Sequence record: MZ574431.2
Length of the DNA stretch: 64,000 nt
Direction: 5' to 3' (one strand)
Below the pieces are notes generated by a model, which saw nothing but the letters and a program-made list of their open reading frames with translations, was not told the DNA's origin and searched no databases. Both the position numbers and the translations under genes were made by a program. This document shows positions 14,327-53,890 of the stretch, one piece after another. The stretch's first letter is position 1, and each line of letters starts with the position of its first letter.

Positions 14327-15520
14327 ATGCTGATCCCTGACGATCTGCGCATCCTGCGTGCGGCTTTCGAGGCCCTCAACCGCGACATCCGCTTCGTGGG
14401 CGGCTGGGTTCGCGCTTACATGCTGGGCGAGGCGCCCAAGGACATCGACCTCTGCACCGACGCCAGCATCGAGGAAATGAAGGAGATCGCCGAAGCCTGC
14501 GACGTGGTGCTTGATCTCTACCCCACGGGCGAGGAGCATGGCACCATGACCTTCCGCCTCGACAGCGGGCTCTACGAAATCACCTGCCTGCGTCAGGAAA
14601 CCGCCCACGATGGCCGGCGCGCAGACTGCGTGTTCGGGCAGGACTGGGACGCCGATTTGGCCCGGCGTGATCTGACGATCAACGCCATGGCCATGGACTT
14701 CGACGGGCGCCTCTACGATCCCCACGGCGGCGCCGTGGACCTCAAGGCCGGCCGCGTGCGCTTTGTCGGTGATCCGGTTGATCGGATGCGCGAGGACTAT
14801 CTGCGCATCTTGCGCTGGCTGCGCTTCCACGCCCGTTACTCCAAGGGACCGCTGGATTTTGACGCCCGCAACGCCGCCGAGGACCTTCGAGATGGTCTGG
14901 GGCCGATCAAGGCAGTCCGAACCAAGATCGGCTACACCGTCTCTCGCGAGCGGGTCTGGGACGAGATGAAGAAGATCATCGCCGGCCCGCGCTCGGCCTA
15001 CATCCTCTTCCAGATGGTTCGCATGCGCCTGGACGAGCCGCTGGGCTTTGATGGGATCGTCATCGGCGACCGCTACAACGCCGTCGTGCGCGAAACCGCC
15101 GATCCGATCGTGAGGCTGGTGGCGTTGTTCGAGGATACCCGCGACATCGAAGCCCTGGCGACCGATTGGAAATGGAGCCGCGAGGAGCGGAGCCGCGCGA
15201 TCTTCCTGTCCAAGTGCCTCCTGGCCGAAGATGTCGACGTTCTCAGCCTCGTCCTCATGGGCGTGTGCGACAAGGACGCCGCCGAGGACATCTGCATCCT
15301 GCGGGAGGATGCCGACCTTTTGGCCTACGTCCGCCGCTGGACGCCGCCAGAGTTTCCGGTAAAGGGTCAGGACCTCCTAGATTTAGGCATGAAGCCTGGG
15401 CCGCAGATGGGCGTTCACCTTGCCAGCCTCCGCCGCCTTTTCGCCGATCATCGCGGGGGCGTCACCAAAGAACAACTGCTCGCCACCCTGCGCCTGGAGA
15501 TAGACCTGTGCCCGTCTTGA
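14327..15520 (+). CDS. cca: class II tRNA nucleotidyltransferase (CCA-adding enzyme / poly(A) polymerase family)
   Basis: FVGGWVRAYMLG..KDIDL, EITCLR.E..DGRRA, DLARRDLTINAM, EDYLRILR motifs. Confidence 0.92.
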   Translation: MLIPDDLRILRAAFEALNRDIRFVGGWVRAYMLGEAPKDIDLCTDASIEEMKEIAEACDVVLDLYPTGEEHGTMTFRLDSGLYEITCLRQETAHDGRRADCVFGQDWDADLARRDLTINAMAMDFDGRLYDPHGGAVDLKAGRVRFVGDPVDRMREDYLRILRWLRFHARYSKGPLDFDARNAAEDLRDGLGPIKAVRTKIGYTVSRERVWDEMKKIIAGPRSAYILFQMVRMRLDEPLGFDGIVIGDRYNAVVRETADPIVRLVALFEDTRDIEALATDWKWSREERSRAIFLSKCLLAEDVDVLSLVLMGVCDKDAAEDICILREDADLLAYVRRWTPPEFPVKGQDLLDLGMKPGPQMGVHLASLRRLFADHRGGVTKEQLLATLRLEIDLCPS

Positions 15521-15834
15521 ATCCCATTCTCGAAACCGAGATCATTCGGATCATCGACAACAAATCGCCCCTTACGGACAAGCCGACCGTGATCGGAGCC
15601 GTCTCCTTCGTCGGAGGCATCCTCTCGGACCGCATCACCCATCTGATCGCCTTCCATGTCGAGGGGTGGGGTCTCAATCGCTGGGCCAACTTCACCTTCA
15701 ACATCGCCGGGCCGGACCCGCTGAACATGAGCGTGCAGAACCTCACCTACCGTGAGGACCTTCGTGTGCCGGGCACCGAGGTCTGGGACGAGGACGACCT
15801 GACCGCCCTGGCCTCCAAACTGCTCTATGTCTAG
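15508..15834 (+). CDS. hypothetical protein
   Basis: GGAG SD before GTG 15508. Confidence 0.65.
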   Translation: MPVLNPILETEIIRIIDNKSPLTDKPTVIGAVSFVGGILSDRITHLIAFHVEGWGLNRWANFTFNIAGPDPLNMSVQNLTYREDLRVPGTEVWDEDDLTALASKLLYV

Positions 15835-16060
15835 CACCGATGCGATCCACCTGCTGACCTCACCCAGTGGCGACAACATCTACCTCGCCGAGGAGGATGT
15901 CGATCCGTTCGCCACCTGGGACCCGCGCTGGAAGGTCGTTCGGTACGATCGGCTCCCCTGCGATGGTCGCATGAGGCAGTTCATTGGCTGGGCCGGTTAC
16001 CTCACCGACGCCAAGGTCCTGGCGCAGGCCAACCTGAGCAAGATGCAAGAATCCAGTTGA
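15827..16060 (+). CDS. hypothetical protein
   Basis: Stop is the TGA of TTGACA. Confidence 0.65.
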   Translation: MSSTDAIHLLTSPSGDNIYLAEEDVDPFATWDPRWKVVRYDRLPCDGRMRQFIGWAGYLTDAKVLAQANLSKMQESS

Positions 16061-16098
16061 CAAACGCCGGCGCCTTCTCCAGGGTGCCGGCGTTTTCA
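16044..16098 (+). promoter_or_regulatory. conserved promoter motif overlaid with terminator-like hairpin
   Basis: TGCAAGAATCCAG-TTGACA; 13-bp stem AAACGCCGGCGCC/GGTGCCGGCGTTT ending in a T4 run; weak -10 (CAGGGT). Confidence 0.65.
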
Positions 16099-16109
16099 AT
16101 GGAGGTTCC

Positions 16110-16370
16110 GTGAGCAATCGACGCGCCAGCTTGAACGGGGGCCAGACCAAGCCGCTGACACCCAGCGCCATCGCGGTGCTGCGTAGCCTGCGAGACTTCG
16201 GTCCGCGCCCGCGTCAGGAGATCAATCCTGGCCACAACGATCGGTTCGAGCGCGAAGACCTGACTGAGGTCTACCGGGACGTCAGCCCCTATGCGTCCCA
16301 CAAGGGCGCCTTGATCCCATTCGTGCGCATCGCCGAGGAAGGTCTGCGCACCCTGCGAGAAATCGGTTGA
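16110..16370 (+). CDS. hypothetical protein
   Basis: GGAGG SD; stop is the TGA of TTGACA. Confidence 0.7.
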   Translation: MSNRRASLNGGQTKPLTPSAIAVLRSLRDFGPRPRQEINPGHNDRFEREDLTEVYRDVSPYASHKGALIPFVRIAEEGLRTLREIG

Positions 16371-16372
16371 CA
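16354..16372 (+). promoter_or_regulatory. conserved promoter motif, -10 unclear
   Basis: TGCGAGAAATCGG-TTGACA; no TA at the 17-18 nt position. Confidence 0.5.
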
Positions 16373-16423
16373 CACCTGTCGGTATAGAGCACCTTCAGCG
16401 TCACAACTTCAACGGGGAGCCCC

Positions 16424-16855
16424 ATGCAGCCCAACGCCTCGAACGTCCGCAACGCGCTGATCCTCCTCAAGGAGGAGGACCCCAATCTGGCGCACCTGCT
16501 GGACCCGGTCATAAACGATCGCGGCTCGCTGAGCACCCTGGCCGAAATCCTCACCAAGACCTACGAGGCCGGCTACAACCGCCCGACCCTGACCAGCTAC
16601 GAAGTCACGGGCCACCGCACCGGCATCTTCCCGCTGGACATGCTGCGCCGGGGCGAGTGCTGGCCGACGACGACGGACGACGCCAACCTGATCGAAAAGC
16701 TCCTGACCCGCGAGGACGCCGTGATCGCCCGCCTGCCTAAGACGGTGACGATCCGCATCACCACCTGCGGCACCGAGTACGCCCAGATGAGCGTCATCGA
16801 CCGCTGGGCCTCGTTCGGCTGGACCGCGCGTGTTCTCCTGGAGGACGTGGCTTGA
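16424..16855 (+). CDS. hypothetical protein
   Basis: GGGGAG SD; VTG...FPLDMLR...CWP motif. Confidence 0.75.
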   Translation: MQPNASNVRNALILLKEEDPNLAHLLDPVINDRGSLSTLAEILTKTYEAGYNRPTLTSYEVTGHRTGIFPLDMLRRGECWPTTTDDANLIEKLLTREDAVIARLPKTVTIRITTCGTEYAQMSVIDRWASFGWTARVLLEDVA

Positions 16856-17124
16856 GCGCCTGGGTCAAGCAACCCATTTCCGAAGTCGGCGAGCGGCGTG
16901 AAATCCTGACCTCGATAGACCGTGAGTGGATCATTCTTCGCTGGGAAGATCGACAGGATCACGCCGGCCGGTGCGATACCGTCACGCGTCGTCCGGGTTG
17001 GACCGACGGGACCTACGATACCTCGGGGAGCATCGCCCATCATGGCTTGCTGTTGGTCTTCGAACCCACCCACTTCTACGCCCTGCCTGATGAAGGAGAA
17101 GACGATGCGCCGCAGCCTGCATAA
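16852..17124 (+). CDS. hypothetical protein
   Basis: GGAGG SD, TTGA overlap. Confidence 0.7.
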   Translation: MSAWVKQPISEVGERREILTSIDREWIILRWEDRQDHAGRCDTVTRRPGWTDGTYDTSGSIAHHGLLLVFEPTHFYALPDEGEDDAPQPA

Positions 17125-17536
17125 GACCGTCACCCTTTTTGGCCGGCAGTTCGGCCTGATCCAGGCCTACAGTAAGGCCCACGATCACTCGATCCTGCAT
17201 GGGAAGTCGACGATCGACCGTTCGGCCTGCCTCCGGGTCCTGGGCCTGGGCGTCGTCCTTCAGTCTCATCAGTCGACCAAGTCCTGGTGCGTGGCCCTGG
17301 GCCATGAATGGCTGTTCGACATCCAACTGAGCGGCACCTTCGCCGGCGCGCCCAAGCCCCCGCCCAATCCGTTCGTCAAGGACGCCCATCGCGCCTACGA
17401 GCCGCACATCGGCCTGTGCCTGATCCTTCTGGGCTCGGTCAGCAAGGCCCTGTGGGCCTGGGACGGCTTTGACGCCACCTCGGTGCTGGCGCCGGGGTCT
17501 GGTCGCGTGATGCGCTGGAGCCATCGCTTTGGCTAA
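17105..17536 (+). CDS. hypothetical protein
   Basis: AAGGAG SD before ATG 17105. Confidence 0.65.
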   Translation: MRRSLHKTVTLFGRQFGLIQAYSKAHDHSILHGKSTIDRSACLRVLGLGVVLQSHQSTKSWCVALGHEWLFDIQLSGTFAGAPKPPPNPFVKDAHRAYEPHIGLCLILLGSVSKALWAWDGFDATSVLAPGSGRVMRWSHRFG

Positions 17537-18752: not shown

Positions 18753-18755
18753 CTA
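18714..18755 (+). promoter_or_regulatory. conserved phage promoter
   Basis: CGCAAGAAAGCTG-TTGACA-17-TAGCTA. Confidence 0.8.
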
Positions 18756-18784
18756 TGCAAGACGTTCAACAGGAAAGGCCCGCC

Positions 18785-19303: not shown

Positions 19304-19356
19304 AGCCACCTTCTTCTCCGGCCCCTGGCCGCCGCATCATTTATCGATAGGACCCC

Positions 19357-19986
19357 ATGTACCCCAAGCACCACCTCATTCTCCACGGGATCGAAGACGC
19401 CGGCATGCAAGGCATGGTCCGCGCCATTCTCGGCCCGGACTACTCCTCGATCATCGTCTCCGAGAACATGATCCACCAGGAGTGGAACAACCCCAAGGCC
19501 GTGGCTGTCCTTCTCCAGCCTGTCTATGACGACGAAAACGACCGCCTGGGCGTGATCGTTGGCAAGCGCGCCATCGCGCCGCAGATCGGCGAGTGGGCGA
19601 TCCCCGGCGGTTTCGTGCAGAACTTCGGCCGATCGATCGAAGAAGAAGCCGTCACCGAGTTCGAGCAGGAGATGGGCATCGCCGGCCTCACCGCCGACAC
19701 CGTGCGCATGTGGCACAGCTACCCCACGCCCAACGGCCGCATCCTGTTCTTCTGTGTCAACGGCCAGACCCTGAAGGCCCGCGAGATCAAGGAGGTCCTG
19801 GGCGCAGGCAAGGGCGACGGCGAGATGAGCGACTTCAAGGTCGCCTATGAGCCGTTCCAACTGGCCTTCCCGTTCCACACCATCGTCATGGAGAAGTTCT
19901 TCCGGTCCTTCCAGGCCGGCGCCAAGGAATTCCCCATGCCCGGCTATGGTCTGATCGCCTCTCGGGGCCATCTGCCGCAACGCTAG
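19357..19986 (+). CDS. Nudix hydrolase (degenerate box)
   Basis: WAIPGGFVQNFGRSIEEEAVTEFEQEMGI; C-terminal LAFPFH. Confidence 0.8.
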   Translation: MYPKHHLILHGIEDAGMQGMVRAILGPDYSSIIVSENMIHQEWNNPKAVAVLLQPVYDDENDRLGVIVGKRAIAPQIGEWAIPGGFVQNFGRSIEEEAVTEFEQEMGIAGLTADTVRMWHSYPTPNGRILFFCVNGQTLKAREIKEVLGAGKGDGEMSDFKVAYEPFQLAFPFHTIVMEKFFRSFQAGAKEFPMPGYGLIASRGHLPQR

Positions 19987-19995
19987 GAGAAGCCT

Positions 19996-27834: not shown

Positions 27835-28469
27835 TCAAGGCCCTGGCCTTCCTCTGCGCCCACGGCGAGTTTGTCCGCCTTGAGGTCAACGACCATCGCA
27901 CCTGCTATGAGTCGCCCGAGCGGAACCTTCGCATGCACTCGCTCCTCCCCGAGGAGTGGTGCAACCAGATCGAGCGCGTCCTGATCCAGGCGGCCGTCGA
28001 GAACGAATCGCCCTTGACCACGGTCAAGGTCTGGACCAACCAGCAGCGCAACGTTGACCGCCAACTGACGGTCGGCGCGTCCTTGCCCATGACCTTGGCC
28101 ATGGCGCTCGATCGCCTGCGGGTCTCCGAGGCGAATGTCATGCCCCTGCCGGAGTTGGAGGAGGACGCCTCCGCGCTCTTGGAGCGCTGCATGGCCTATC
28201 TCTTCTCCAACGCCCTCTCCTGGTATCTGGACGTCCAGCCCTTCTGCCCCGAGGACGCCATGCCTCTCGACGCCCTGATCGAGTGCAACATGGCCGCGCC
28301 AGAGGACTGGATCGGCGAGGAGCCGTGGACGCGTGACTACACCGGTCCGTTCCACGCCCTGATCATCTATCCCGACAACCCTGTGGGAAGCTGGTGCTTC
28401 TACGGCCCGTCCGTGCCGGACCTGCTGATCAAGGGCTATCAGACGCTGAAGGAGTATCGCGCCCAATGA
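27831..28469 (+). CDS. hypothetical protein
   Basis: GTGA/ATGA overlaps. Confidence 0.75.
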   Translation: MIKALAFLCAHGEFVRLEVNDHRTCYESPERNLRMHSLLPEEWCNQIERVLIQAAVENESPLTTVKVWTNQQRNVDRQLTVGASLPMTLAMALDRLRVSEANVMPLPELEEDASALLERCMAYLFSNALSWYLDVQPFCPEDAMPLDALIECNMAAPEDWIGEEPWTRDYTGPFHALIIYPDNPVGSWCFYGPSVPDLLIKGYQTLKEYRAQ

Positions 28470-29308
28470 CCGAGACCAAGGACGCCCTGGGCGACCGGAT
28501 GAAGGCCTACGAGAAGGTCGAGACGGGGCGGCGCTTCATGCCCGGTCTGCCGGTGATCGTGCGCCTGGATGGTCACGGCTTCTCGCGCTTCACCAAGGGC
28601 CTTCAAAAACCCTTCGACATGCGCATGGTCGCCGCCATGGCCGAGACCACCAAGGCCTTGGTCGAGAAGACCCATGCACGCCTGGGCTACACCCAGTCCG
28701 ACGAGATCACCCTGGTCTTCATGCCCAAGGATGACATCGAGCAGTATTTCTTCGCCGGCAAGGTCTTCAAGATGAAGTCCGTGCTGGCCGGCCTGTGCTC
28801 GACCCTCTTCTATCGCAACTTCGAGCGCGAGTGGCTCGCCAGAACCGGGGACGCCGCCCACGACCTTACGGCCCTGACCCGCTACCTGGAGCGCAATCCC
28901 CACTTCGATGCGCGCGCCTTCCAGGTGCCCGTCGACTACGAGGCCGCCAACGCCGTCCTCTGGCGCGTCAAAGACGCCGAGCGCAACGCCGTGCAGATGG
29001 CGGCCCAGTCGCTCTACTCGCAAAAGCAGCTTCACAAGCTGTCGACCGAGACCCTGCGCCGCAAGATCGCCGAGGGTGGCCTGGACTTCGACGCCTATCC
29101 TCGCGCCATCCGCAGCGGCAGCTTCTTCCAGTCGGTCACAGAGCTTCGGCCGATCCCGCCCGAGGCGCTGGAGCGGATGAAGGAGAAAGACCGGCCGGCG
29201 GACGGTATGATGCGACGCGCCTCGGTCCAGGAAGTGGCCGCCGAAGGTCCGGTCGCCTACCGAACGGTCGCCGATCTCCTGGGCATCGTGCCGGTGATGG
29301 ACGTCTGA
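28466..29308 (+). CDS. thg1: tRNA(His) guanylyltransferase Thg1-like protein (3'-5' polymerase)
   Basis: RMKAYE...IVRLDGHGFSRFT...KPFD...GYTQSDEITL...FDARAFQVP...WRVKDAERN signature. Confidence 0.92.
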   Translation: MTETKDALGDRMKAYEKVETGRRFMPGLPVIVRLDGHGFSRFTKGLQKPFDMRMVAAMAETTKALVEKTHARLGYTQSDEITLVFMPKDDIEQYFFAGKVFKMKSVLAGLCSTLFYRNFEREWLARTGDAAHDLTALTRYLERNPHFDARAFQVPVDYEAANAVLWRVKDAERNAVQMAAQSLYSQKQLHKLSTETLRRKIAEGGLDFDAYPRAIRSGSFFQSVTELRPIPPEALERMKEKDRPADGMMRRASVQEVAAEGPVAYRTVADLLGIVPVMDV

Positions 29309-30294: not shown

Positions 30295-30888
30295 GTGACC
30301 GACAAGACCCTGCCCCCGCCGCCCCACGTCGCCGAAGATGACCAGTTCGAGGAACTGGCGCGGGTGTGGGTGCGCCGCGATGCGGCTCCCACCGACGGCG
30401 AGAGCCAGATCAGCCTGGGCGTCACGCTCAGCGATCGCGCCAGCTTCCACGAAGTCATGGGCCTGCTGAGCGCGGTCGCCACCGGCTACATCATCCAGCA
30501 GCCCGAAGTCGCCGCCGCCTCGGGCGAGATCAAGGACTACCTGATCGCCCAGGGCACCCAGCAACTGCTGGAGCAGACCGTCGAGGCCGCCAGCCCGCTG
30601 CGGCCCCAGCATCTCCCCGCGCCGGACGAACTGCTCTACGAGCCCGGTTCGGTCAACATCGCCAGCCTCTGGATCGATCCTTCGCAGGAAGGCACCCACA
30701 CCATCTTCGCCGGCGAGCCCCAGAAGCTTGGGGCCAAGACGCTCGGCGGCCTCCTGGCGACGATGCTGCTCGAAGCCGGGCGCAACGCCGACGGCACCTT
30801 CAACGTCGACTTCATCGAGGGCCTGCAAACCTCGATCGCCACGACGACCAAGGCGTATCTGGCCCAAGAGGGTCAACCCACGCAATGA
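30295..30888 (+). CDS. hypothetical protein with two related halves (DUF5076-like)
   Basis: LPPPPHVAED...ELARVWV versus LPAPDELLYE...NIASLWI; GGGAG SD. Family name recalled, not searched. Confidence 0.6.
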   Translation: MTDKTLPPPPHVAEDDQFEELARVWVRRDAAPTDGESQISLGVTLSDRASFHEVMGLLSAVATGYIIQQPEVAAASGEIKDYLIAQGTQQLLEQTVEAASPLRPQHLPAPDELLYEPGSVNIASLWIDPSQEGTHTIFAGEPQKLGAKTLGGLLATMLLEAGRNADGTFNVDFIEGLQTSIATTTKAYLAQEGQPTQ

Positions 30889-31571
30889 TGCGCAAGGCTC
30901 TACTGTTCTCGTCCGCCCTGGCCGCCATCCTGGCCTTGGCCACCAGCACCGAAGCCGGCGAGATCGCCGGCTCGGTCACCCTGACCTCCGCCTACATCTC
31001 ACGGGGCACCGACCAGAACGTCCTCAACGGCGCGGCCGTCCAGGGCTTCGTGACCTACGCCAAGGGTCCATTCTACGTCAGCGCCTTCGCCTCGACCATG
31101 AACTATGGCGAGGGCACGACCAAGGAACTCGACTTCTTCGGCGGCGTCCGCAAGAGCTACGGTCCTTGGACGGTCGACGTCGGTTTCGCCAACATCAACT
31201 ATCCCGACAACCACACGCCGCTGAACTTCGTCGAGTACGATCTGAAGATCGATCGCGCGGTCGGCAAGGGCAACGTCGGCGTCTGGCTCGGCTACACCGA
31301 CGCCTACTTCAACACCTATGGCCAGGGCGTCTGGACCGAGGCCCATGTCAGCTACCCGATCACCAGCACGGTGTCGATCAGCGGCGCGGTCGCCAACCAG
31401 GACCTGCCCAACAACTTCGACTACCGGACCTGGAACGTCGGCGTCACCAAGGCCTTCGCCCATGGCGTCTCGGCCGATCTGCGCTATAGCGACACCGATC
31501 GCCACGACCTGGACCCGCGCTGGAACACCTACGGCGCGCGGACCTCGCTGACCCTGTCCAAGAGCTTCTGA
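30885..31571 (+). CDS. TorF/TIGR02001-family outer-membrane beta-barrel (putative porin)
   Basis: Sec signal (MMRKALLFSSALAAILALATSTEA), GSVTLTSAYISRG.DQ, ELDFFGG, YSDTD, C-terminal Phe. Confidence 0.85.
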   Translation: MMRKALLFSSALAAILALATSTEAGEIAGSVTLTSAYISRGTDQNVLNGAAVQGFVTYAKGPFYVSAFASTMNYGEGTTKELDFFGGVRKSYGPWTVDVGFANINYPDNHTPLNFVEYDLKIDRAVGKGNVGVWLGYTDAYFNTYGQGVWTEAHVSYPITSTVSISGAVANQDLPNNFDYRTWNVGVTKAFAHGVSADLRYSDTDRHDLDPRWNTYGARTSLTLSKSF

Positions 31572-31582
31572 AGGGGGAGCCG

Positions 31583-32218
31583 ATGAGCCTGCTTGAAATC
31601 CTCGCCACCGCCGTGACGGTCGCCTGCGTCCTACTGGCCGTCAAGCGTTCGACGTGGCAGTACCCGGTCGGGATCGTCGGTACGATCCTGTTCTTCTTCG
31701 TCTTCCAAGGCGCCAAGCTCTACGCCAGCGCCATGCTCCAGGTGTTCTTCACCCTCGTCCAGGTCTACGGCTGGTGGTACTGGACGCGCGGCGATCGAGG
31801 CAAGTCGCCGCCGATCACCTCCTGGAGCCCGGCCTTCACCGGGGCGATCGTGGTTGCCGGCCTCGTGGTGGGCGTGGTGCTGAGCATGATTCTCAACGCC
31901 TTCACCGACGCCAAGGTGGCGCTCTGGGACTCGGCGATCTTTGGCCTGTCCATGGCCGCTCAGTTCCTGCTCGACCGCAAGAAGCTGGAGAACTGGACCG
32001 TCTGGGGTCTGGTCAACATCATCTCGGTCTTCGTCTACTGGCAGCAAGGCCTGACCGTCGCGGCGATCCTCTATGCCGGCCTGTTCGTCAACGCCTTCTG
32101 GGGCCACTATGAGTGGGCCAAGGCCAAGCGCGCCCAGAAGATCGTCTGGGACGCCGAGGCCCAGAAGTACCCGGCCGCGCCCATCCATGAACCGAAGCCT
32201 GGGGACCTGCTGACTTGA
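31583..32218 (+). CDS. pnuC: nicotinamide riboside transporter PnuC
   Basis: YGWWYW, WDS...S..AQFLL.RKKLENW..W motifs; multi-TM. Confidence 0.92.
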   Translation: MSLLEILATAVTVACVLLAVKRSTWQYPVGIVGTILFFFVFQGAKLYASAMLQVFFTLVQVYGWWYWTRGDRGKSPPITSWSPAFTGAIVVAGLVVGVVLSMILNAFTDAKVALWDSAIFGLSMAAQFLLDRKKLENWTVWGLVNIISVFVYWQQGLTVAAILYAGLFVNAFWGHYEWAKAKRAQKIVWDAEAQKYPAAPIHEPKPGDLLT

Positions 32219-33258
32219 ACCACGCCGTCGAAGTCCCCGCCCATCCCTTCGAAGCCAAGCCCGAGCGCGGCTTTGTCCTGGGCAAGTTCATGCCGCCGAC
32301 CGAGGGCCATCGGTTCCTCTGCGAGTTCGCCAGAGAGTACGTGCAGAAGCTGACCATCCTGGTCTGCTCGATGCCCGATGAGCCCATCGACGGCTTCCTG
32401 CGCTTCCAGTGGATGCGCGAGATGTTCCCGGACTGCAATGTCCAGTGGTGTCAGGAAATCCTGCCCCAGGAACCCGTCGGCGAGGACCCGGAGTTCTGGT
32501 CGACCTGGGCCGGCGTCATCCAGAAGTACGGCAGCCGCTACGGCGAGCCTTATCGCCCCGATGTCGTCTTCGCCTCGGAGACCTATGGTCACAAGCTGGC
32601 CGCCAGCGTCGGCGCGCGGTTCGTGCCCTGCGACATCAGTCGCACCGCGCGCGACATCTCCGCGACCCGCATCCGCGCCCAGCCCCTGGCCAACTGGTCC
32701 TACATCCCCAACGTCGTGCGCCCGCACTTCGTCAAGCGGGTGACCATGTTCGGCCCCGAAAGCAGCGGCAAGTCGACCCTGGCGACCGCGCTCGGCAAGG
32801 TCTTCGACACCATCGTCGTGCCCGAGTATGGTCGCACCTATACCGAGCAGTTCGGAGCCGACGTCGGCGCCGAGGACCTGATCCGCATCGTCCAGGGTCA
32901 CCGCGCCAGCGTGGCGGCGGCCAAGCGCCAAGCCAACCGCATCATGTTCGAGGACACCGACCCGATCATGAGCGCGGTCTGGGCCGACATGCTGGGCGTC
33001 GCGCGCGACCCCTGGTTCGACAGCTTTGACGACAAGGCCGACCTTTATCTGCTGTGCGGCGTCGACATCCCCTGGGAAGACGACGGGACGCGCTACTTCC
33101 CCAGGCAGTCCGACCGCGAGCGCTTCTATGATCTCTGCAAGGCGGAACTCGAACGGCGCGGCTGCCGCTACATCGAGATCAGCGGGTCCATGCTGGAGCG
33201 CCGGGTCCAGGCGATCGCGGCAGTGACCAAAACCTTTGGCATCGAGGTGGCGATTTGA
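32215..33258 (+). CDS. nadR: NadR-type NMN adenylyltransferase / ribosylnicotinamide kinase
   Basis: GKFMPPTEGH (T/HxGH), ISATRIR, Walker A GPESSGKS, PEYGR, DIPWEDDGTR. Confidence 0.92.
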   Translation: MNHAVEVPAHPFEAKPERGFVLGKFMPPTEGHRFLCEFAREYVQKLTILVCSMPDEPIDGFLRFQWMREMFPDCNVQWCQEILPQEPVGEDPEFWSTWAGVIQKYGSRYGEPYRPDVVFASETYGHKLAASVGARFVPCDISRTARDISATRIRAQPLANWSYIPNVVRPHFVKRVTMFGPESSGKSTLATALGKVFDTIVVPEYGRTYTEQFGADVGAEDLIRIVQGHRASVAAAKRQANRIMFEDTDPIMSAVWADMLGVARDPWFDSFDDKADLYLLCGVDIPWEDDGTRYFPRQSDRERFYDLCKAELERRGCRYIEISGSMLERRVQAIAAVTKTFGIEVAI

Positions 33259-38556: not shown

Positions 38557-38738
38557 CCATCACCATCTTCTACGGCAATAACGCGGGCGTCAGCGTCCAC
38601 CAGTCCGTCGTCGACAACATCGCCTCGGCCGAAAGCTGCAAGCAGCTTGCCAAGGTCCACACCTGGAACAACTCCAACCAGTACCGGACGCTGAACTCGA
38701 TCGCCGTCTGCGCGCCGGTCCGAAAGGCCAAGGTCTGA
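38538..38738 (+). CDS. small secreted or membrane-anchored protein
   Basis: GGGAG SD; hydrophobic N-terminus; two Cys. Confidence 0.65.
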   Translation: MLVWVLTITIFYGNNAGVSVHQSVVDNIASAESCKQLAKVHTWNNSNQYRTLNSIAVCAPVRKAKV

Positions 38739-39190
38739 TGCGCTACTATCTCGATTGCGAATTCGATGGGCACGGCGGTACGCTGCTGTCCATGGCGCTC
38801 TATCGCAAGGACTTCCGCTCCCTCTACATGGTCCGCGACGACGCCGAGCAGATCGCCAACAACGCCTGGGTCTGCGAGCACGTCCTGCCGGTCCTGCGCA
38901 AGTCGCCCTCGAACATCGCCATCCACACCATTCCGATCGCCGAGTTCGGTCCGACGCTGGCGGAATTCTTCAAGGGCGAGCAGCCCTACATCGTCGCCGA
39001 CTGGCCCGCCGACATCATCCACTTCTGCCAGCAGTTGATGATCCAGCCCGACAAGATGGCGGCGGTCCCCAACTTCGTCACCCAGGTCATCCGCATCCCC
39101 GACGCCTACGCCGACACGCCCTTCAAGAGCGCCGTGCGGCACAATGCCATGTGGGACGCGATCGTCCTCTGCGACGCCATCGAGCCTTGA
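38738..39190 (+). CDS. DEDD 3'-5' exoribonuclease (Rv2179c/RNase AS-like)
   Basis: YYLDCEF...SMAL...RHNAMWDA. Confidence 0.8.
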   Translation: MRYYLDCEFDGHGGTLLSMALYRKDFRSLYMVRDDAEQIANNAWVCEHVLPVLRKSPSNIAIHTIPIAEFGPTLAEFFKGEQPYIVADWPADIIHFCQQLMIQPDKMAAVPNFVTQVIRIPDAYADTPFKSAVRHNAMWDAIVLCDAIEP

Positions 39191-39266: not shown

Positions 39267-39632
39267 ATGAGGAACAAAGGCGTACCCTGTTATTTGAGGT
39301 GTCCTGTGACTGCCCGCCCGCCGTGGATTGAATACCCGACGCATGATGGCGTGCAGGAGCGCTTGCGCTACTATGCCGACCCTCATGGCATCTGCCTGCA
39401 TTTCGAGCTTCACGACGTCCAGTTCGGCTATCCGCTGATCGACGGCGAGGCCCGCATCCGGGGGCACGTCAAATGGGACGGCACCCTCAACTGGGAAACC
39501 CACAAGAACCTTATGTGCCAGTTCATCGGTCCGGGAGACTCGATGCGGCTGCACCAATGGTTCCTGACCCTCTGGCGCCTGGGAAGGGATAACCTATCGC
39601 AATGGGACGCCGACATGGATGACCTGCTGTGA
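39267..39632 (+). CDS. hypothetical protein
   Basis: GTGA overlap with next; start uncertain. Confidence 0.6.
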   Translation: MRNKGVPCYLRCPVTARPPWIEYPTHDGVQERLRYYADPHGICLHFELHDVQFGYPLIDGEARIRGHVKWDGTLNWETHKNLMCQFIGPGDSMRLHQWFLTLWRLGRDNLSQWDADMDDLL

Positions 39633-40186
39633 GCCCCGAGGACATCGAATTCACCCAGCGCTGGTGGCGGCGCAAGGTTGCTGACGAGGCCGCCTTGCTG
39701 GCCTTCCTGATCAAGCTCCACCGCACCGAGTGGGAGGGCATGGTTGACAACAACGAGGCGGCCGTTCGCTGGGCCAAGGGCGACAACGTCGCCAGCAATA
39801 TCTTCCTGCAAACCGGCTACGACGAGGCGCGCCATGCCGATCTACTGGTTCCGCTGATCGAGGCCCGAGGCGGCTCTGTCGGCATTGGTCAGAACCCGCC
39901 GCCCTCCCTCTACTGGGAGGAGATGGACAAGGTCATCACCAGCCTGGAGACCTGCGCGGCCGTTCTGCACGTCGGTGAGCAACTGGCGGCCGATCGCTTT
40001 TCGGTCATGCTCGACATGCCCGAAACGCCGCAGGACATCCGGGGCTTCCTGGAGGAGGCCCTGCCCGACGAACGCCACCATGCTCGCGTCTTTGGCAAGC
40101 TGGCCGGCGAGGAGGCGATCGCCCTGGTCAGAGACCACCACGCCGCGACCGTGCGCCGGCTGATGGGCCTGCAAGGGGTCGAATGA
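39629..40186 (+). CDS. ferritin-like di-iron protein
   Basis: E...DEARH...E...DERHH, two ExxH pairs. Confidence 0.8.
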   Translation: MSPEDIEFTQRWWRRKVADEAALLAFLIKLHRTEWEGMVDNNEAAVRWAKGDNVASNIFLQTGYDEARHADLLVPLIEARGGSVGIGQNPPPSLYWEEMDKVITSLETCAAVLHVGEQLAADRFSVMLDMPETPQDIRGFLEEALPDERHHARVFGKLAGEEAIALVRDHHAATVRRLMGLQGVE

Positions 40187-43148: not shown

Positions 43149-43561
43149 ACAACGACCACTATCTTGACAAGCCGATCATGCGCTCGTTCAGCGTGCGCGC
43201 CGGCCCGCTCTATGTGGTGGTCTACGAGATCGAGGCCCATGAAGGCCCCGAGGTTCAGCTTCACTACTATGTCGACGACGTCCTGATGGCGCTGCTGCCC
43301 GAGCGGGCCATCAAGCTGCTCAGGTTGAACCGCGACGGCATCAGCCAGTACCTGAAGGCCGAGGACGACTCCTTCAGCGTCCTCTACGACGAGGACGCAG
43401 GTACGGTGATGCGCCTGCGTCGTCGGCCCGACGGCGCCGGCCCCGTGCTGCGCCTGGAGCACTACGGCATGACGATCGCCAATCTGACCGCCGGCCTCGC
43501 CGAGGTCGATGTGATCCTTCAGGCCTATGGCCGGTATCTCGCGAACAAGGAAAAACCGTGA
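43145..43561 (+). CDS. hypothetical protein
   Basis: GTGA overlaps. Confidence 0.7.
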   Translation: MNNDHYLDKPIMRSFSVRAGPLYVVVYEIEAHEGPEVQLHYYVDDVLMALLPERAIKLLRLNRDGISQYLKAEDDSFSVLYDEDAGTVMRLRRRPDGAGPVLRLEHYGMTIANLTAGLAEVDVILQAYGRYLANKEKP

Positions 43562-44001
43562 CCGATCCCGAAAACCGCGACTACACCGTCTGCTACCTGC
43601 TGATGCGCACCGACCTGAAGTCGCTGTGCGCCGGCAAGGCGATGGCCCAGGCCCACCACGCCGCCCTCCAGATGGAACAGGACGCCAAGTCCTGGACCCC
43701 GGAGCAGCAGGAGGTCTTCGCCCGCTATCGCACCGAGGCCAAGGGCTTTGGCACCACGATCGTCCTGGGCGTCACCGCCCAGGAGATGCGCGCGGCCCTG
43801 ATCCGCGCCCGTGACCTGGGCTACAATCACGCCGTGGTCAACGATCCCGAGTACCCTCTGATGGACGGCGGGTTCCTGCATCACATCCCGCTCGACACCT
43901 GCGCCTACGTCTTCGGCGAGAAGCGCTTTGTCGAGAACGCGGTGATCAAGCTGGACCTGCTGCGCCGCGCCAGTCTATGGCAGCCGGCGGTCAAGGCGTG
44001 A
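43558..44001 (+). CDS. PTH2-family peptidyl-tRNA hydrolase-like protein
   Basis: YLLMRTDL...GKAMAQAHHAA...TIVL...VNDP. Confidence 0.75.
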   Translation: MTDPENRDYTVCYLLMRTDLKSLCAGKAMAQAHHAALQMEQDAKSWTPEQQEVFARYRTEAKGFGTTIVLGVTAQEMRAALIRARDLGYNHAVVNDPEYPLMDGGFLHHIPLDTCAYVFGEKRFVENAVIKLDLLRRASLWQPAVKA

Positions 44002-49164: not shown

Positions 49165-49166
49165 TC

Positions 49167-50175: not shown

Positions 50176-50176
50176 C

Positions 50177-50200
50177 AAGATCGGCGAAAAGATCGGCGAA
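50177..50200. repeat. 12-bp perfect tandem duplication
   Basis: AAGATCGGCGAA twice, intergenic. Confidence 0.9.
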
Positions 50201-50280
50201 GACTGGGCTGTAAAACCCGACAACCTCCTGATCTGGTAAAACATTCCGACGCCGCAGGATCGGCAATCCTTGGATCGACG

Positions 50281-50784
50281 ATGACCCCTTCTGATCAGCA
50301 CCGCAATCGAGCCCTCGTGATCGCCCTAGGCGGCGTGGAGCCCTGGGAACGGACCGCCACGCCGACCTATGCCGTGATGCACAAGGAAGACACCGGTCGG
50401 GTGGTGGTGACCGAGACCACCAAGGCGCCGCGCCAGCAAACCAACGAGTTCGATTTCATCGCCAGTCTGGACCGACGCTATGCGCCTCGGTTCTTCCTGG
50501 TCGACGCCAGTCTGCCCAAGCATTTCCTGGACGCCGTCCGATCCGAACTGGGCTATCGCGGCATCCCGCTGCGCCTCATCGCCCAGAGCCATCCGGGGCG
50601 TGATCGTCTTGACCTGATCCACCACCTCTTCCGCTTGGAGCGCCTGGATGTCACCAGGGCGGTTGATCTGGCCCACCCCCATGCGGTCGACGCCGTGACC
50701 TTGGGCTTCACCCACCTCAACGCCCCGCCCCCGGTCGTCTACCACTTCGCGCCGGACCGATCGGGCCGTCTCGGCCGATGGTGA
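50281..50784 (+). CDS. hypothetical protein
   Basis: Stop inside promoter motif. Confidence 0.65.
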   Translation: MTPSDQHRNRALVIALGGVEPWERTATPTYAVMHKEDTGRVVVTETTKAPRQQTNEFDFIASLDRRYAPRFFLVDASLPKHFLDAVRSELGYRGIPLRLIAQSHPGRDRLDLIHHLFRLERLDVTRAVDLAHPHAVDAVTLGFTHLNAPPPVVYHFAPDRSGRLGRW

Positions 50785-50821
50785 GAATCCTGTTGACAAC
50801 CTAGGGTCATGCGCCTATATG
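50780..50821 (+). promoter_or_regulatory. conserved phage promoter
   Basis: GGTGAGAATCCTG-TTGACA-17-TATATG. Confidence 0.75.
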
Positions 50822-50860
50822 CCGCACCAAGTCATCAATCTTGGCACGGAGGCATGGATC

Positions 50861-50986
50861 ATGGTACGTCATCTTTGGTGCTCGATGTTTCACTGGCTCC
50901 GCTGGGAATTGCTCGACGCTCAGGACAAAACCAATCGCCGCTGGCGATGCACGGAGTGCGGTGAGCACCACCATGTCGAGGACTAG
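50861..50986 (+). CDS. 41-aa micro-protein with CxxC
   Basis: Not in ORF track: MVRHLWCSMFHWLRWELLDAQDKTNRRWRCTECGEHHHVED; GGAGG SD 8 nt upstream; directly after a promoter. Confidence 0.7.
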   Translation: MVRHLWCSMFHWLRWELLDAQDKTNRRWRCTECGEHHHVED

Positions 50987-51025
50987 ACCCCACTCGAAGC
51001 TGGCCGATGTCCTGGCGGCCTCCTG

Positions 51026-51238
51026 ATGCCTTGGGACATGCGCGCCCAGCACCGTAGGCGTAGCTGCGAGGGCAAGGTTCGCTACGCGACTGAAACCCTG
51101 GCCCGCGCCGGCGCCCAGGAGATGCTCAAGCGGACGGGACGTCGCCGAGGCGGCGTGTATCCGTGCGAGTTCTGTGGCCTATGGCACGTGTCCAGCGAGG
51201 GCAAGGGCCGCTACGTCGTTATGCAAGAAAACTGTTGA
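51026..51238 (+). CDS. small YxCxxCxxWH Zn-finger protein (paralog of 49891-50175)
   Basis: CEGKVRYAT...VYPCEFCGLWHV; stop is the TGA of TTGACA. Confidence 0.75.
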   Translation: MPWDMRAQHRRRSCEGKVRYATETLARAGAQEMLKRTGRRRGGVYPCEFCGLWHVSSEGKGRYVVMQENC

Positions 51239-51265
51239 CAAGATCGTCTGACCGGCTGATATAGG
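51222..51265 (+). promoter_or_regulatory. conserved phage promoter
   Basis: TGCAAGAAAACTG-TTGACA; TGATATAG in the -10 region. Confidence 0.8.
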
Positions 51266-51299
51266 GCCATCAACGACGACAACGAAAGGCCCGCCGTCC

Positions 51300-53437
51300 A
51301 TGCTGGAGACCAGTCCTCTTTGGGAAGCCATCGCGCTCTGGGAAGAGATCACCGGCGTGGCCGTGCCCGGCGAGGACAATCGCTTCAAGGGCTCGTGGGG
51401 CAACTACGAGGTCCACAAGACCTACGAGGAACTGCGCGACACCCTGGAGCTTGATCCCTCCGAGGTCACGACGAACCTGATGTTCAACATCTTCGTCAAG
51501 GAGTGGCTGGGCAAGCAGAAGTTCGACCTGCTGTCGCTGACCAATGATCCTCAGTCCTTCCTCGACAAGACCATCAAGCCGCGCAAGCTACTCGACATCC
51601 TCAATCGCGAGGAGATCATCGAGGCGCGTGATGAGTTCCTGGAAACGCTGCAAGCCACGGCCGTCAAGTACGGCGCCGACCAGCGCGAAGACCTCCAGAA
51701 GACCCTGGGCCAGCACGATCTGGTCGCGATCCTGCGCCGCGATGCGCTGAAGGCGGTCAACCGCCTGCGCGTCCACCAGTTCACCGCCGGCGACTCCGAA
51801 GCCGCCGACTACAAGCCCGTCTATGTCAAGACCGTCCACCAGTGGTGGAACATCAACTCGTTGCTCGACGCGGCGCTGAAGATGCCGTCGGGCGTGTCGC
51901 TGAACCTGATCAAGGACCCGGACGTCTACCAGTCCTTCTACTGCTTCTGCATCCGCAACGGCGGCAATCTCTTCATCCTGACCGACGCGCCCGAGCACGC
52001 TCACCCGCTGCACGGCCTCTTCACCCGCAAGCCCGAGCGCGCCTACGAGCAGCGTGTCTATCAGGCGTGGTTCCCCTACGACCTCCTGGGCCTGGAATGG
52101 GACGAGGAGGCCGAGCAATACTACCAGAAGGCCTCTGAAGTCACGGCCCTGACCGCCTATCAGAACCAGCAACTGCCCCTGAAGCCGTTCAATGAACTGC
52201 CGCCGGCCGAGTTCCTGTGGTGCTCGATGATGCTCGACCTGATCGTCGAGAAGTTCTGGCGCCAGAACTATCAGGCCAAGGCTCTGTCCTACACCGGCGA
52301 GATGCTGGTCATCGAAAACCGCCTGGAAGCTGCCGCAAGCTCGGCCAACCTGCCCGTCGTCAACTACGAGCGCCTGAACCTGCCGGCCCTGTCCCTGGCG
52401 GACATGCGCTCGGACGTCCTGGGCGCCGAGGCGATCGGCAAGGGCTACCACCAGCCCAACAAGTGGCTGGAGGACCGCTTCATCGACAAGGTCCCCGAGA
52501 CGGTCCTGAACCTTGTGGCCAACGCCGATCGCATGCTGCTGCTCGATCGCAAGACTGGCCAAATCGAGACCCAGTCGCGTGAGTTCGTCAAGAAGTACAA
52601 GGCCATTCCGAAGATTTTCGATCGTGACCGCGATCAGATGCTGGCCGGCCGGGCGCAGATGGAGGTGCTCAACCCCACGCGCTTTGGCACCCGCGAGGAA
52701 CTGGACAACGATCGCAAGTTCATCGCCCGCTACAACTTCGCCAGCGAAATCCAGCGGCTGGCCAAGGAAGAGTTCGAGGACCGCAAGGACGACATCAAGT
52801 CCTGGTGGAAGACGAGCCTGCGCAAGAACCTGCCCAACCTCCTGGCCTACGCCGGCTGCAAGGTCCTCTGGGCCGAGGCCGACATGCAGGGCTCCAACGA
52901 CAGCTTCGACATGCTCCGCAGCGGCGGGGGCGCGGCATCCACCTGGACACCCACGCAGCGGCGTCCCTGGGCGCTGACAAAACCGGCCGCATCCGCAAGG
53001 TGCTGCACACCTTTGCTGATCGCCACGACATCCAGGCCTTCAGCTACGAGACCGCCGGCTTCTCGTCGACCAATCTCGGTGGCTACGACCAGCGCCGGGG
53101 CTACCTCTGCGCGGTCAACGACACCAAGGCCAGCTACATGCAGACCTTCCACCCGGCCAATGCCGAGGAACTAGCGCTGCTGGCCGGCATCGACATCAAG
53201 GACCTGCCGGACGTGCTCCAGCACTGGACCCTGGCCGATCCCTATGACGGCAACCACATCCTCTCGCGCATCGACCCGCTGAACTGGAGGGTGAGCAATC
53301 CCTGGCTGAAGCTGAACTTCCAGGTGGTCCTGCCGCTCTCGATGCGCGCCGAGGCCAAGCTGGTCGCTCGCAAGCCGCCCCTGACCTACCTGTGGCCCGA
53401 CGACAAGATCAGCGATACGGGCCGCCCCTTCCTCTAA
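51300..53437 (+). pseudogene. large hypothetical gene (~710 aa if joined) split by a -1 frameshift near 52926-52930
   Basis: ORF 51300-53174 loses codon bias after the G5 run; the -1 frame (ORF 52805-53437) gains it from that point. Confidence 0.7.
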
Positions 53438-53446
53438 GGATTCTCG

Positions 53447-53890
53447 ATGCAAGACGAACTTCGCCTCTACGCCATCACCAGCCTCGAAGCCATCCAAGCC
53501 ATGGGCGGCAATCGCGGCAAGCTCGGCGCCCAGGCCGCCCATGCCTGTCTCCATGCGTGGTTTGACGCCTATGAGCGCTTCCCCAAAGTCGCCAAAGCCT
53601 ACGCCAAGTCCATGGCGGCCGTGAAGATCGCGCTTGTCGTCCCGACCAACGATGAGCTTGTCGACCTTGCTCGCGTCTTCGAAGGCGAGTGCGGCGATGT
53701 CCTGGTCGTGCCGACCACCGACGACCTGCGGACCATGCAGCCGGTCTTCGAAGGCGAGTGCGGCGTCACCCTGGTCACCGACGCCGGCCGCACGGTTCTC
53801 CAGCCCGGCACTGTCACCTTCCTGGGCGTGGGGCCGATCACCAAGGCGCGCTTCGCCGAACTGGCGCCCGGCCTCGTGCCGCTCTGCTGA
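53447..53890 (+). CDS. PTH2-family peptidyl-tRNA hydrolase
   Basis: GKLGAQAAHA, KIALV, VTDAGRT..QPGTVTFLGVGP. Confidence 0.88.
   Translation: MQDELRLYAITSLEAIQAMGGNRGKLGAQAAHACLHAWFDAYERFPKVAKAYAKSMAAVKIALVVPTNDELVDLARVFEGECGDVLVVPTTDDLRTMQPVFEGECGVTLVTDAGRTVLQPGTVTFLGVGPITKARFAELAPGLVPLC
53675..53765 (+). repeat. intragenic 69-bp-period duplication
   Basis: GTCTTCGAAGGCGAGTGCGGCG at 53675-53696 and 53744-53765. Confidence 0.9.

Follow-up and report, generated by a model that had tools for sequence, protein, structure and literature searches.

The window, a stretch of 64,000 nucleotides analysed over its whole length, is identical (100%) to positions 186001-250000 of Caulobacter jumbo phage J4 (Bertelyvirus; MZ574431.2). 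Its roughly 140 ORFs are small, lie on one strand and are mostly unannotatable; the genes considered here are spread among them, non-adjacent and spaced 10-15 kb apart, and no family matches were obtained for their immediate neighbours. Part of a gene was found in one wastewater DNA run only. The features are:

7807-8334, plus strand: RelA/SpoT-type HD hydrolase (small alarmone hydrolase, SAH), a candidate extra member outside the range of the initial annotation
14327-15520, plus strand: class II CCA-adding tRNA nucleotidyltransferase, 397 aa (GenBank, 'CCA-tRNA nucleotidyltransferase')
28466-29308, plus strand: bacterial-type Thg1-like protein (TLP), a 3'-5' nucleotidyltransferase (GenBank, 'tRNAHis-5'-guanylyltransferase')
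38738-39190, plus strand: small DEDDh 3'-5' exonuclease, RNase AS (Rv2179c)-like (motifs, PHROG 2259)
43558-44001, plus strand: PTH2a, divergent PTH2-fold hydrolase (Pfam PTH2, 31.1 bits; cut-off 23)
53447-53890, plus strand: PTH2b, PTH2 peptidyl-tRNA hydrolase (Pfam PTH2, 50.8 bits)
57755-57833 and 57836-57910, minus strand: tRNA-Arg(CCG) and tRNA-Arg(UCU) (ARAGORN, Rfam)
60556-61293, plus strand: DEDDh exonuclease with N-terminal extension (Pfam DEDDh_C, 6.8e-10)

All six protein genes named in the initial annotation (CCA enzyme, TLP, two PTH2-fold hydrolases, two DEDDh exonucleases) are real, and the textbook activities it gave for their families are correct. Its description of them as a dispersed kit holds for the dispersal; the genes are scattered, without an operon, and form no dedicated kit. 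Several are already named in GenBank, and the families are of a known, ordinary kind. Measured against the NCBIfam equivalog cut-offs, the CCA enzyme, PTH2a, PTH2b and the exonuclease resembling RNase AS score far too low for these family matches to fix exact specificities.

The CCA enzyme (residues 4-389) aligns over its full length with human mitochondrial TRNT1 (E 3e-53), with the motifs GGxVR..DxD, RRDLTINAM, EDYLR, and ERvW and an undeleted flexible loop; it matches the Pfam PolyA_pol head (1.6e-26) and PHROG 2244 (8.7e-49), and its best NCBIfam match is CCA tRNA nucleotidyltransferase (143 bits, vs 85 bits for PcnB). Both tRNA-Arg sequences in the window end in ...gcca, as had been noted earlier, and on these two tRNAs rested the proposal that the enzyme serves repair rather than maturation. 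Across the J4 genome, CCA is encoded in 25 of 27 tRNA genes. Those for tRNA-His (GUG) and tRNA-Val-GAC end at N73-C74, without C75A76, and adjoin tRNA-Ala and tRNA-Ile, respectively, with zero spacer after C74; the same CCA-less His and Val-GAC genes are kept in CcrBL9. The CCA enzyme therefore has maturation substrates, and the exclusion of maturation falls. The enzyme is still present in Colossus, CcrPW, and Kikimora, where all tRNA genes encode CCA, so that maturation alone is an insufficient explanation; judged from these gene ends, a maintenance or repair role is plausible. Cleavage by RNase P where the next tRNA begins would generate the 3' end at N73-C74, the CCA enzyme would then complete phage tRNA-His and tRNA-Val-GAC, and CCA ends nibbled by exonucleases would be rebuilt by the same enzyme.

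The TLP, present as one copy in the J4 genome, matches Pfam Thg1 (1.1e-29) and PHROG 4717 (2.4e-66). Its nearest PDB entry is the Bacillus thuringiensis TLP (BtTLP; 4KGK, 1.2e-23), human Thg1 reaching only 5e-4, and its catalytic motifs RxDG and SDE align. TLPs carry out template-dependent 3'-5' repair of 5'-truncated tRNAs; the J4 protein would likewise be a template-dependent 3'-5' polymerase refilling such tRNAs, and not a G-1 adder in this host.

PTH2a belongs to PHROG 1866, and its AlphaFold model (pLDDT 89) has Pth2 structures as all of its top 12 PDB matches (TM 0.77-0.82). By tblastn, its phage matches are solely in alphaproteobacterial phages (of Caulobacter, Brevundimonas, Sinorhizobium, Ruegeria, Erythrobacter, Agrobacterium, and related hosts); 247 metagenomic homologues were found, most with PF01981. 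In the PTH2a alignment (A1), K27, Q31, and H34 are invariant, and D113, aligned to the Asp of DAG, is near-invariant. PTH2b matches PDB Pth2 entries at 6e-8 at best, carries the motifs GK..AQ..H and DAG.T..GT.T..GP, and contains VFEGECG twice, a lineage-specific internal duplication. It occurs in 39 phage records, including phiCbK (annotated there as PTH2 family protein), and in all sampled phiCbK-like phage genera but Colossusvirus; J4, CcrBL9, phiCbK, and Kikimora share K25, Q29, H32, D112, and T116 without variation. As read from the alignments, the catalytic Lys and Asp are kept in both paralogues, which would hydrolyse peptidyl- or N-blocked aminoacyl-tRNA, an activity of archaeal/eukaryotic type. 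The Caulobacter vibrioides control genome gave no Thg1-family match and no PTH2 match; a PolyA_pol-family enzyme and Pth1 are both present in it.

The translation of 38738-39190 has DxE (D6, E8), ADWPAD, and H135-x4-D140, and matches PHROG 2259 (1e-24), NCBIfam RNase_AS weakly (2e-5, far below cut-off), and the PDB exoribonuclease 6S0M/4OKE over the N-terminal 58 aa only (4e-4); a Pfam DEDD search gave nothing. In 60556-61293, DIE, NYDFD, and H-x4-D motifs accompany a DEDDh_C match of 39.8 bits (cut-off 27); PHROG and NCBIfam searches were without match, and the only PDB match, to a QIP exonuclease, was marginal. Both may be candidate 3' trailer trimmers. The SAH matches Pfam HD_4 (6.9e-9) and NCBIfam spoT_relA (4.2e-10), and its LLHDcfED and KVADRivNlR motifs align with Rel hydrolase domains. 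Its membership of the tRNA set is possible; the link to tRNA would be by analogy with the phage SAH PaSpo, which takes toxSAS pyrophosphate off tRNA CCA ends (PMC11559606). Outside the window, J4 has one HAD_PNKP+kinase (Pnkp-like) gene and three RNA-ligase-family genes, an Rnl1-like ligase among them; the Pnkp-like gene and the Rnl1-family ligase lie near genome positions 121 kb and 157 kb. The set would be one part of a larger RNA-maintenance/repair repertoire dispersed over the J4 genome, with no operon.

Co-occurrence across related phages, suggested in the initial annotation as a check, was found in part: Bertelyvirus, Colossusvirus, and Brevundimonas phage Kikimora have the CCA enzyme, TLP, and PTH2a together, and phiCbK lacks all three. 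Yen9-04 and Atu_ph07, jumbo phages that are unrelated and rich in tRNAs, carry the same trio. The co-occurrence covers few independent lineages and follows genome size. Single families occur alone elsewhere (TLP in PMBT8 and Bcp1; PTH2b in phiCbK). With 25-28 tRNAs and no phage CCA enzyme, TLP or PTH2a, phiCbK shows that a tRNA-rich phage of the same host can do without the set.

From the gene identities, conserved catalytic residues, tRNA gene ends, and distribution in related phages observed here, we consider it on balance probable that these are independent jumbo-phage genes which jointly preserve a working tRNA pool in the infected cell, with the activities and substrates predicted for their families; the selective pressure behind them may be host immunity or wear of the translation apparatus in general.

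A dedicated counter-defence set, mainly reversing tRNA damage by host abortive-infection effectors, is conceivable but rather unlikely. An anti-immunity role for this gene set is not new, since it was proposed in 2021, when CCA enzyme, Thg1, and PTH2 were suggested to let jumbo phages mend tRNAs attacked by host immunity (Iyer et al. 2021, Viruses 13:63, section 3.4.9; PMC7824862). Besides this published hypothesis, it is favoured by the Thg1 and PTH2 activities without match in the control host genome; by the CCA enzyme retained where relatives' tRNA genes all encode CCA; by the TLP of tRNA-less phages, which must therefore act on host RNA there; by the presence in J4 of Pnkp, the Rnl1-like ligase, other RNA-ligase-family genes, and the SAH; and by the removal of a toxSAS mark from tRNA by a phage SAH (PMC11559606). 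Against it stand the existence of phiCbK without the set on the same host and a literature in which no experiment was found that connects a defence system with any of these phage enzymes (CCA enzyme, TLP, PTH2). PrrC, PARIS AriB, and colicin D, the threats originally named, are anticodon-loop cutters, and their damage is beyond repair by these three enzymes; the relevant J4 enzymes, judged by family, are Pnkp and the RNA ligases outside the window. We also know of no defence aimed at the tRNA 5' end. If counter-defence were the purpose, the fitting threats would be acceptor-end toxins, not anticodon nucleases. Candidates are toxSAS enzymes that pyrophosphorylate CCA, a mark the SAH would undo; toxins of MenT/AbiEii type that extend or trim 3' ends, which exonuclease plus CCA enzyme would counter; and GNAT toxins that acetylate aminoacyl-tRNA, which PTH2 would counter. 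Anticodon-loop cuts would be left to Pnkp and RNA ligases elsewhere in the genome.

We doubt that the genes are functionally unconnected and grouped only as an effect of reading 64 kb together. Large phage genomes gather nucleic-acid enzymes, the exonucleases might act on DNA, and the PTH2-fold proteins or the TLP might have non-tRNA substrates; the dispersal among uncharacterised ORFs without operon structure, the occurrence of each family alone, the generic DEDDh signatures of the exonucleases, and the departure of PTH2a from the canonical DAG.T motif of Pth2 are all in keeping with this. However, the trio is repeated in unrelated tRNA-rich jumbo phages, catalytic residues are kept across genera, and tRNA acceptor ends are, to our knowledge, the sole well-established substrates of CCA enzyme, TLP, and PTH2.

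In the J4 tRNA-His gene, position -1 is U, G1 pairs with U72, and position 73 is G; given G1:U72 and G73, templated addition would yield no G-1. Caulobacter HisRS, with U72 and the anticodon as identity elements, does not require G-1, the addition of which cuts kcat/Km 5-fold (PMC3064791); by its sequence, the phage tRNA-His fits this G-1-independent host enzyme. It is thus very improbable that the TLP is, as its GenBank name says, a guanylyltransferase adding G-1 to the phage's own tRNA-His: all five sampled TLP-bearing phiCbK-like phages (J4, CcrBL9, Colossus, CcrPW, Kikimora) encode tRNA-His, phiCbK has neither, and Kikimora tRNA-His (C73, G-1 not encoded) is a classical TLP substrate, but the J4 protein is closest in sequence to bacterial TLPs, not Thg1, and TLPs occur in PMBT8 (no tRNAs), Yeet (one tRNA), Yen9-04 (about 30 tRNAs), and 4L372D, all without tRNA-His, and this role was rejected.

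The J4 genes have parallels in several known systems. In phage T4, Pnkp and Rnl1 heal and seal PrrC-cleaved tRNA-Lys; their J4 counterparts are the HAD_PNKP+kinase gene and the Rnl1-family ligase, whereas the enzymes of the window would have acceptor ends and the peptidyl bond as targets instead of anticodon loops. T4 dimeric tRNA precursors without encoded CCA reportedly depend on a CCA enzyme (work of Deutscher, McClain, and Seidman); tRNA-His/tRNA-Ala and tRNA-Val/tRNA-Ile of J4 likewise stand head to tail, the upstream tRNA needing CCA addition, although the enzyme is the host's in T4 and the phage's own in J4, and the J4 genes are short of C75A76 only. BtTLP (4KGK) is the best solved relative of the J4 TLP, with catalytic motifs aligned; the J4 protein, whose activity is predicted, differs by an extra C-terminal extension of about 70 aa without counterpart. 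Archaeal/eukaryotic Pth2 (Sulfolobus, 1XTY; human Bit1/PTRH2, 1Q7S) has the fold and the catalytic Lys/Asp positions in common with both phage proteins, each of which is about 30 aa longer; PTH2a has PLDTC in place of DAG.T, and PTH2b has the internal duplication. PaSpo (Salmonella phage SSU5) is, like 7807-8334, a stand-alone phage-encoded RelA/SpoT-type HD hydrolase, a likeness by family and not by direct alignment; for the J4 protein, (p)ppGpp or (p)ppApp is an equally possible substrate. The jumbo-phage RNA repair/ribosome rescue repertoire of Iyer et al. (2021), in which Caulobacter jumbo phages are placed in group 3 (PMC7824862), has the same parts (tRNAs, RNA ligases, polynucleotide kinase/phosphatase, CCA-adding enzyme, Thg1, PTH2) and the same proposed purpose, undoing host attacks on tRNA, with no essential difference from J4. 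To it, J4 adds the CCA-less His and Val-GAC genes; the mismatch between its TLP and a host tRNA-His system independent of G-1; a second, alphaproteobacterial-phage PTH2 clade; and the SAH.

On the sequence evidence, we lean towards reading the tRNA-end enzymes of Caulobacter phage J4 (312,338 bp; Bertelyvirus, Dolichocephalovirinae) as scattered, lineage-conserved enzymes of tRNA end maintenance and recycling, which would support translation in a tRNA-rich jumbo phage through maturation as well as repair. The initial annotation had proposed a dispersed tRNA rescue kit. The genes concerned, by window position, are:

7807-8334, plus strand, stand-alone RelA/SpoT-type HD hydrolase (small alarmone hydrolase, SAH) with intact LLHDcfED and KVADR motifs; GenBank label 'HD/PDEase domain protein'
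14327-15520, plus strand, CCA enzyme; GenBank label 'CCA-tRNA nucleotidyltransferase'
28466-29308, plus strand, Thg1-like protein (TLP); GenBank label 'tRNAHis-5'-guanylyltransferase'
38738-39190, DEDDh exonuclease
43558-44001, PTH2a, PTH2-family protein
53447-53890, plus strand, PTH2b, PTH2-family protein
60556-61293, DEDDh exonuclease

The families first assigned to the CCA enzyme, the TLP, the two divergent PTH2 proteins and the two DEDD exonucleases were all borne out, and the interpretation was supported in part; nothing links either of the exonucleases to tRNA. Both exonuclease translations show DEDDh motifs (ExoI DxE; ExoII D; ExoIII H-x4-D); 60556-61293 passes Pfam DEDDh_C with 39.8 bits, and 38738-39190, for which no Pfam DEDD match was obtained, bears a weak likeness to the RNase AS/Rv2179c exoribonuclease and a strong one to PHROG 2259.

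The CCA enzyme (397 aa) carries the PolyA_pol head (PF01743; 93.6 bits, 1.6e-26 in Pfam) and matches human mitochondrial TRNT1 over residues 4-389 (E 3e-53), with motif A (GGWVR..DIDL) and motif B (RRDLTINAM) aligned to TRNT1, and motif D (EDYLRILR, the EDxxR nucleotide template) and motif E present. An undeleted flexible loop sets CCA-adding apart from CC-adding enzymes, and the loop here (etahDGRradcvF) aligns to human TRNT1 free of gaps. That the protein might be a poly(A) polymerase, a case the initial annotation had allowed for, is argued against by the sequence: poly(A) polymerases match it in the head alone (7e-15), and NCBIfam ranks CCA transferase (143 bits, under the equivalog cut-off of 290 for NF009814) over PcnB (85 bits). 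By its motifs and its body and tail domains, 14327-15520 is a predicted divergent class II CCA-adding enzyme. Homologues occur in 355 phage records, many annotated so among the matches listed; the Caulobacter vibrioides control genome carries a PolyA_pol-family enzyme of its own.

For what the CCA enzyme acts on, the tRNA genes of the phage were considered. The initial annotation had argued for repair rather than maturation from the two tRNA genes of the window, both tRNA-Arg, and the encoded CCA was verified in both sequences; that basis was too narrow, since CCA is encoded in 25 of the 27 tRNAs of the J4 genome and the other two need CA. These two are the upstream members of zero-spacer pairs (J4 genome positions, with positions in the genome stretch labelled L031 in brackets):

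77565-77713 (L031:4565-4713), His/Ala tRNA pair, upstream member without encoded C75A76
84715-84863 (L031:11715-11863), Val(GAC)/Ile tRNA pair, upstream member without encoded C75A76

The tRNA-His(GUG) gene (77565-77637) and the tRNA-Val(GAC) gene (84715-84787) both stop at N73-C74, the next base being G1 of tRNA-Ala and of tRNA-Ile, respectively. Cleavage of the downstream tRNA by RNase P would leave ...N73-C74-OH on the upstream one, to which C75A76 would have to be added. Because both genes end at C74 and both junctions are kept in CcrBL9, the phage has maturation substrates for the enzyme. Colossus, CcrPW and Kikimora have the CCA enzyme, yet encode CCA in all their tRNA genes; its retention in these all-CCA relatives is therefore not explained by maturation, and a maintenance or repair role, to which the earlier argument pointed, is plausible. 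The tRNA genes of phiCbK, which has no phage CCA enzyme, are essentially all-CCA.

The TLP scores 103 bits against a Pfam Thg1 cut-off of 29 (1.1e-29) and 2.4e-66 with PHROG 4717. Among solved structures it is nearest to the Bacillus thuringiensis Thg1-like protein (4KGK; 1.2e-23), a match far better than that to eukaryotic Thg1 (just 5e-4), so that 28466-29308 is assigned as a bacterial-type TLP; the RxDG (RlDG) and SDE (SDEI) catalytic motifs, with their carboxylates, align to the B. thuringiensis protein. No match to the Thg1 family was found in the control genome; homologues occur in 149 phage records, many annotated so among the matches listed.

The tRNA-His of Caulobacter lacks G-1 (alphaproteobacterial group), and its HisRS, which recognises the anticodon and U72, works less well with G-1 added, kcat/Km falling 5-fold (PMC3064791). 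In J4, the tRNA-His gene shows U at -1, with G1:U72 and G73; by sequence it belongs to the host type, and G-1 would not result from templated addition. Among seven TLP-bearing phages of other clades, PMBT8 lacks tRNA genes altogether, Yeet carries a single one (Gly), 4L372D carries one or two and Yen9-04 about 30, in neither case with His, and Atu_ph07 has a tRNA-His with G1:U72/A73; since TLP phages without tRNA-His exist, the TLP is not tied to a phage tRNA-His. A role as maturase of the phage tRNA-His was rejected on these grounds (G-1 independence of the host HisRS; G1:U72/G73 in J4; TLP in phages without tRNA-His), and the GenBank name 'tRNA-His guanylyltransferase' for the J4 TLP is probably a functional misnomer. 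Bacterial TLPs carry out template-dependent repair of 5' ends, and such repair is the best available reading of the predicted activity of the J4 protein.

A 5'-editing role of the TLP, as in amoebal mitochondria, was also rejected, as 1:72 mismatches occur in TLP-lacking phiCbK too (Ile-GAU, Met) and no correlation was seen. The tRNA-Met(CAU) of J4 (J4 genome 145144-145220; L032:1144-1220) has a U1xU72 mismatch and C73 and resembles the open 1:72 pair of the initiator type; its counterparts in phiCbK and Kikimora have C1xU72. At the identity positions of tRNA-His, J4 and CcrBL9 (G1:U72, G73) are strikingly unlike Colossus (62400-62474, L043) and CcrPW (69940-70014, L046), both U1xU72 with A73, and Kikimora (229814-229889, L052), which has C1-G72 and C73 with no encoded G-1, in contrast to the reported U72 dependence of the host HisRS.

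PTH2a (31.1 bits) and PTH2b (50.8 bits) both exceed the Pfam PTH2 cut-off of 23, keep the catalytic Lys and Asp, and are the sole PTH2 matches in the J4 genome; both miss the NCBIfam PTH2 equivalog cut-off of 126 (22.7 and 52.6 bits, respectively). PTH2b has matches among Pth2 structures and retains GK..AQ..H and DAG.T..GT.T..GP; K25, Q29, H32, D112 and T116 do not vary between J4, CcrBL9, phiCbK and Brevundimonas phage Kikimora (four genera), and homologues occur in 39 phage records, some annotated PTH2, from every sampled phiCbK-like genus bar Colossusvirus. An internal duplication at about residues 66-107 of PTH2b, with the VFEGECG motif twice, is missing in the phiCbK and Kikimora orthologues and partial in CcrBL9; no matching tandem repeat of about 90 bp was found there at DNA level, and the duplication is therefore an old one that has diverged. 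PTH2a gave no phmmer match in the PDB. Its 247 metagenomic homologues mostly carry PF01981; K27, the Gln and the His are invariant, and D113, aligned to the Asp of DAG although the motif reads PLDTC, is nearly so. The AlphaFold model (pLDDT 89.1) returned Pth2 for all of the top 12 Foldseek matches (probability 1.00; TM 0.77-0.82), and on this model PTH2a is a Pth2 fold; its tblastn phage matches are confined to phages of Alphaproteobacteria. No PTH2 was matched in the control genome, which has Pth1, and no Pth1 was found in the J4 genome.

The window is made up of about 140 small genes, nearly all 'hypothetical', in one long block on the same strand; the tRNA-end enzyme genes sit in it at intervals of 10-15 kb, separated by unrelated ORFs. 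The window is 100% identical to positions 186001-250000 of J4 (MZ574431.2). RB23, C1, C2 and two 'Bertelyvirus sp.' records differ very little from J4; BL47 is about 92-99% identical to the window, and CcrSC and CcrBL9 about 73-77%. Pfam gave no relevant match for the ORFs that overlap or flank the CCA, TLP and PTH2 genes, nor for 20 larger window ORFs. In read archives a single wastewater DNA run matched, with 6% of the sampled words, and no RNA run did. Elsewhere in the window, a Gcw_chp/porin-like protein, a PnuC-like transporter and a NadR-like AAA_28 kinase lie consecutively at 30885-33258 (plus strand), likely a module for NAD-precursor uptake and salvage; a rubrerythrin-like protein (Pfam 1.4e-5) lies at 39629-40186 (plus strand), and a Nudix hydrolase with weak MutT-like matches at 19357-19986 (plus strand).

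Co-occurrence was profiled across 13 genomes, with similarity matches taken as the best 60 of 149-355 records. The CCA enzyme, TLP and PTH2a occur together in Bertelyvirus (J4, CcrBL9), Colossusvirus (Colossus, CcrPW) and Kikimora, and all are absent from phiCbK; the three are found together again in Yen9-04 and Atu_ph07, which are unrelated jumbo phages rich in tRNAs. In smaller phages with a TLP, what is missing is the CCA enzyme (Bcp1, Yeet, PMBT8, 4L372D), PTH2 (D69, Bcp1, Yeet, PMBT8) or both. The trio is associated with large, tRNA-rich genomes, in few independent lineages and with each family also alone. No physical linkage of the genes as one unit was found: they are dispersed in J4, and each family occurs alone elsewhere.

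The initial annotation had named PrrC, AriB and colicin D as the threats countered. These cut anticodon loops, and the enzymes that match them lie outside the window (J4 genome positions):

121234-122292, minus strand, Pnkp-like gp167c, HAD_PNKP phosphatase N-terminal and kinase C-terminal
131649-132236, 157067-158230 and 269081-270160, three RNA-ligase-family genes, two labelled only 'hypothetical'

The ligases comprise gp208 (Rnl1-family) and gp176 and gp453 (further RNA_ligase-family proteins); no RtcB was found in the J4 genome. Together with the Pnkp-like protein they could mend the cuts made by PrrC, AriB and colicin D.

A survey of 224 jumbo phages, Caulobacter phages included, has described tRNAs, RNA ligases, kinase/phosphatases, CCA-adding enzyme, Thg1 and PTH2 and read them as serving repair and ribosome rescue where the host attacks tRNA (Iyer et al. 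2021, section 3.4.9; PMC7824862). A dedicated anti-immunity role, which if true would be directed against acceptor-end toxins rather than anticodon nucleases, is plausible and already published, but appears less likely to us as the main function: the literature search found no experimental test of it for the CCA enzyme, TLP or PTH2, and no experiment showing a phage CCA enzyme, TLP or Pth2 defeating a defence system.

We give still less credence to a more specific form, in which the window enzymes and the SAH would make up an acceptor-end rescue pathway complementing anticodon-loop repair by Pnkp and RNA ligases. The SAH could act on (p)ppGpp or (p)ppApp, or on toxSAS pyrophosphate on tRNA ends. 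A phage SAH is known to strip toxSAS pyrophosphate off tRNA CCA ends (PMC11559606), and 7807-8334 is for this reason, we infer, a possible further member. In such a pathway the SAH would strip toxSAS pyrophosphate; 3' extensions of the MenT/AbiEii type, or 3' trimming, would be undone by a DEDDh RNase together with the CCA enzyme; N-acetylated or peptidyl-tRNA would fall to the PTH2s for clearance; and the TLP would repair 5'-end damage. We know of no defence system that inflicts 5'-end damage of the TLP type.

Tentative as it is, the preferred reading of tRNA end maintenance and recycling comes with a corrected CCA argument, a probable misnomer for the TLP, acceptor-end toxins as the threats that would be relevant and a genome-wide repertoire that includes Pnkp and RNA ligases. 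Of mild interest is a TLP in a host for whose tRNA-His G-1 plays no part, which would make its real function testable; because Caulobacter tRNA-His does not use G-1, J4 and its host would offer a clean natural setting for non-His TLP function in vivo. The components are annotated families and the counter-immunity idea is already in the literature, and the set belongs, as an ordinary case, to an already known type. The J4 Pnkp-like protein has its domains in the reverse of the T4 order. If the set does counter tRNA-directed immunity, phage Thg1-like proteins would gain a biological role and the T4 Pnkp/Rnl1 paradigm would be extended from anticodon loops to acceptor ends.
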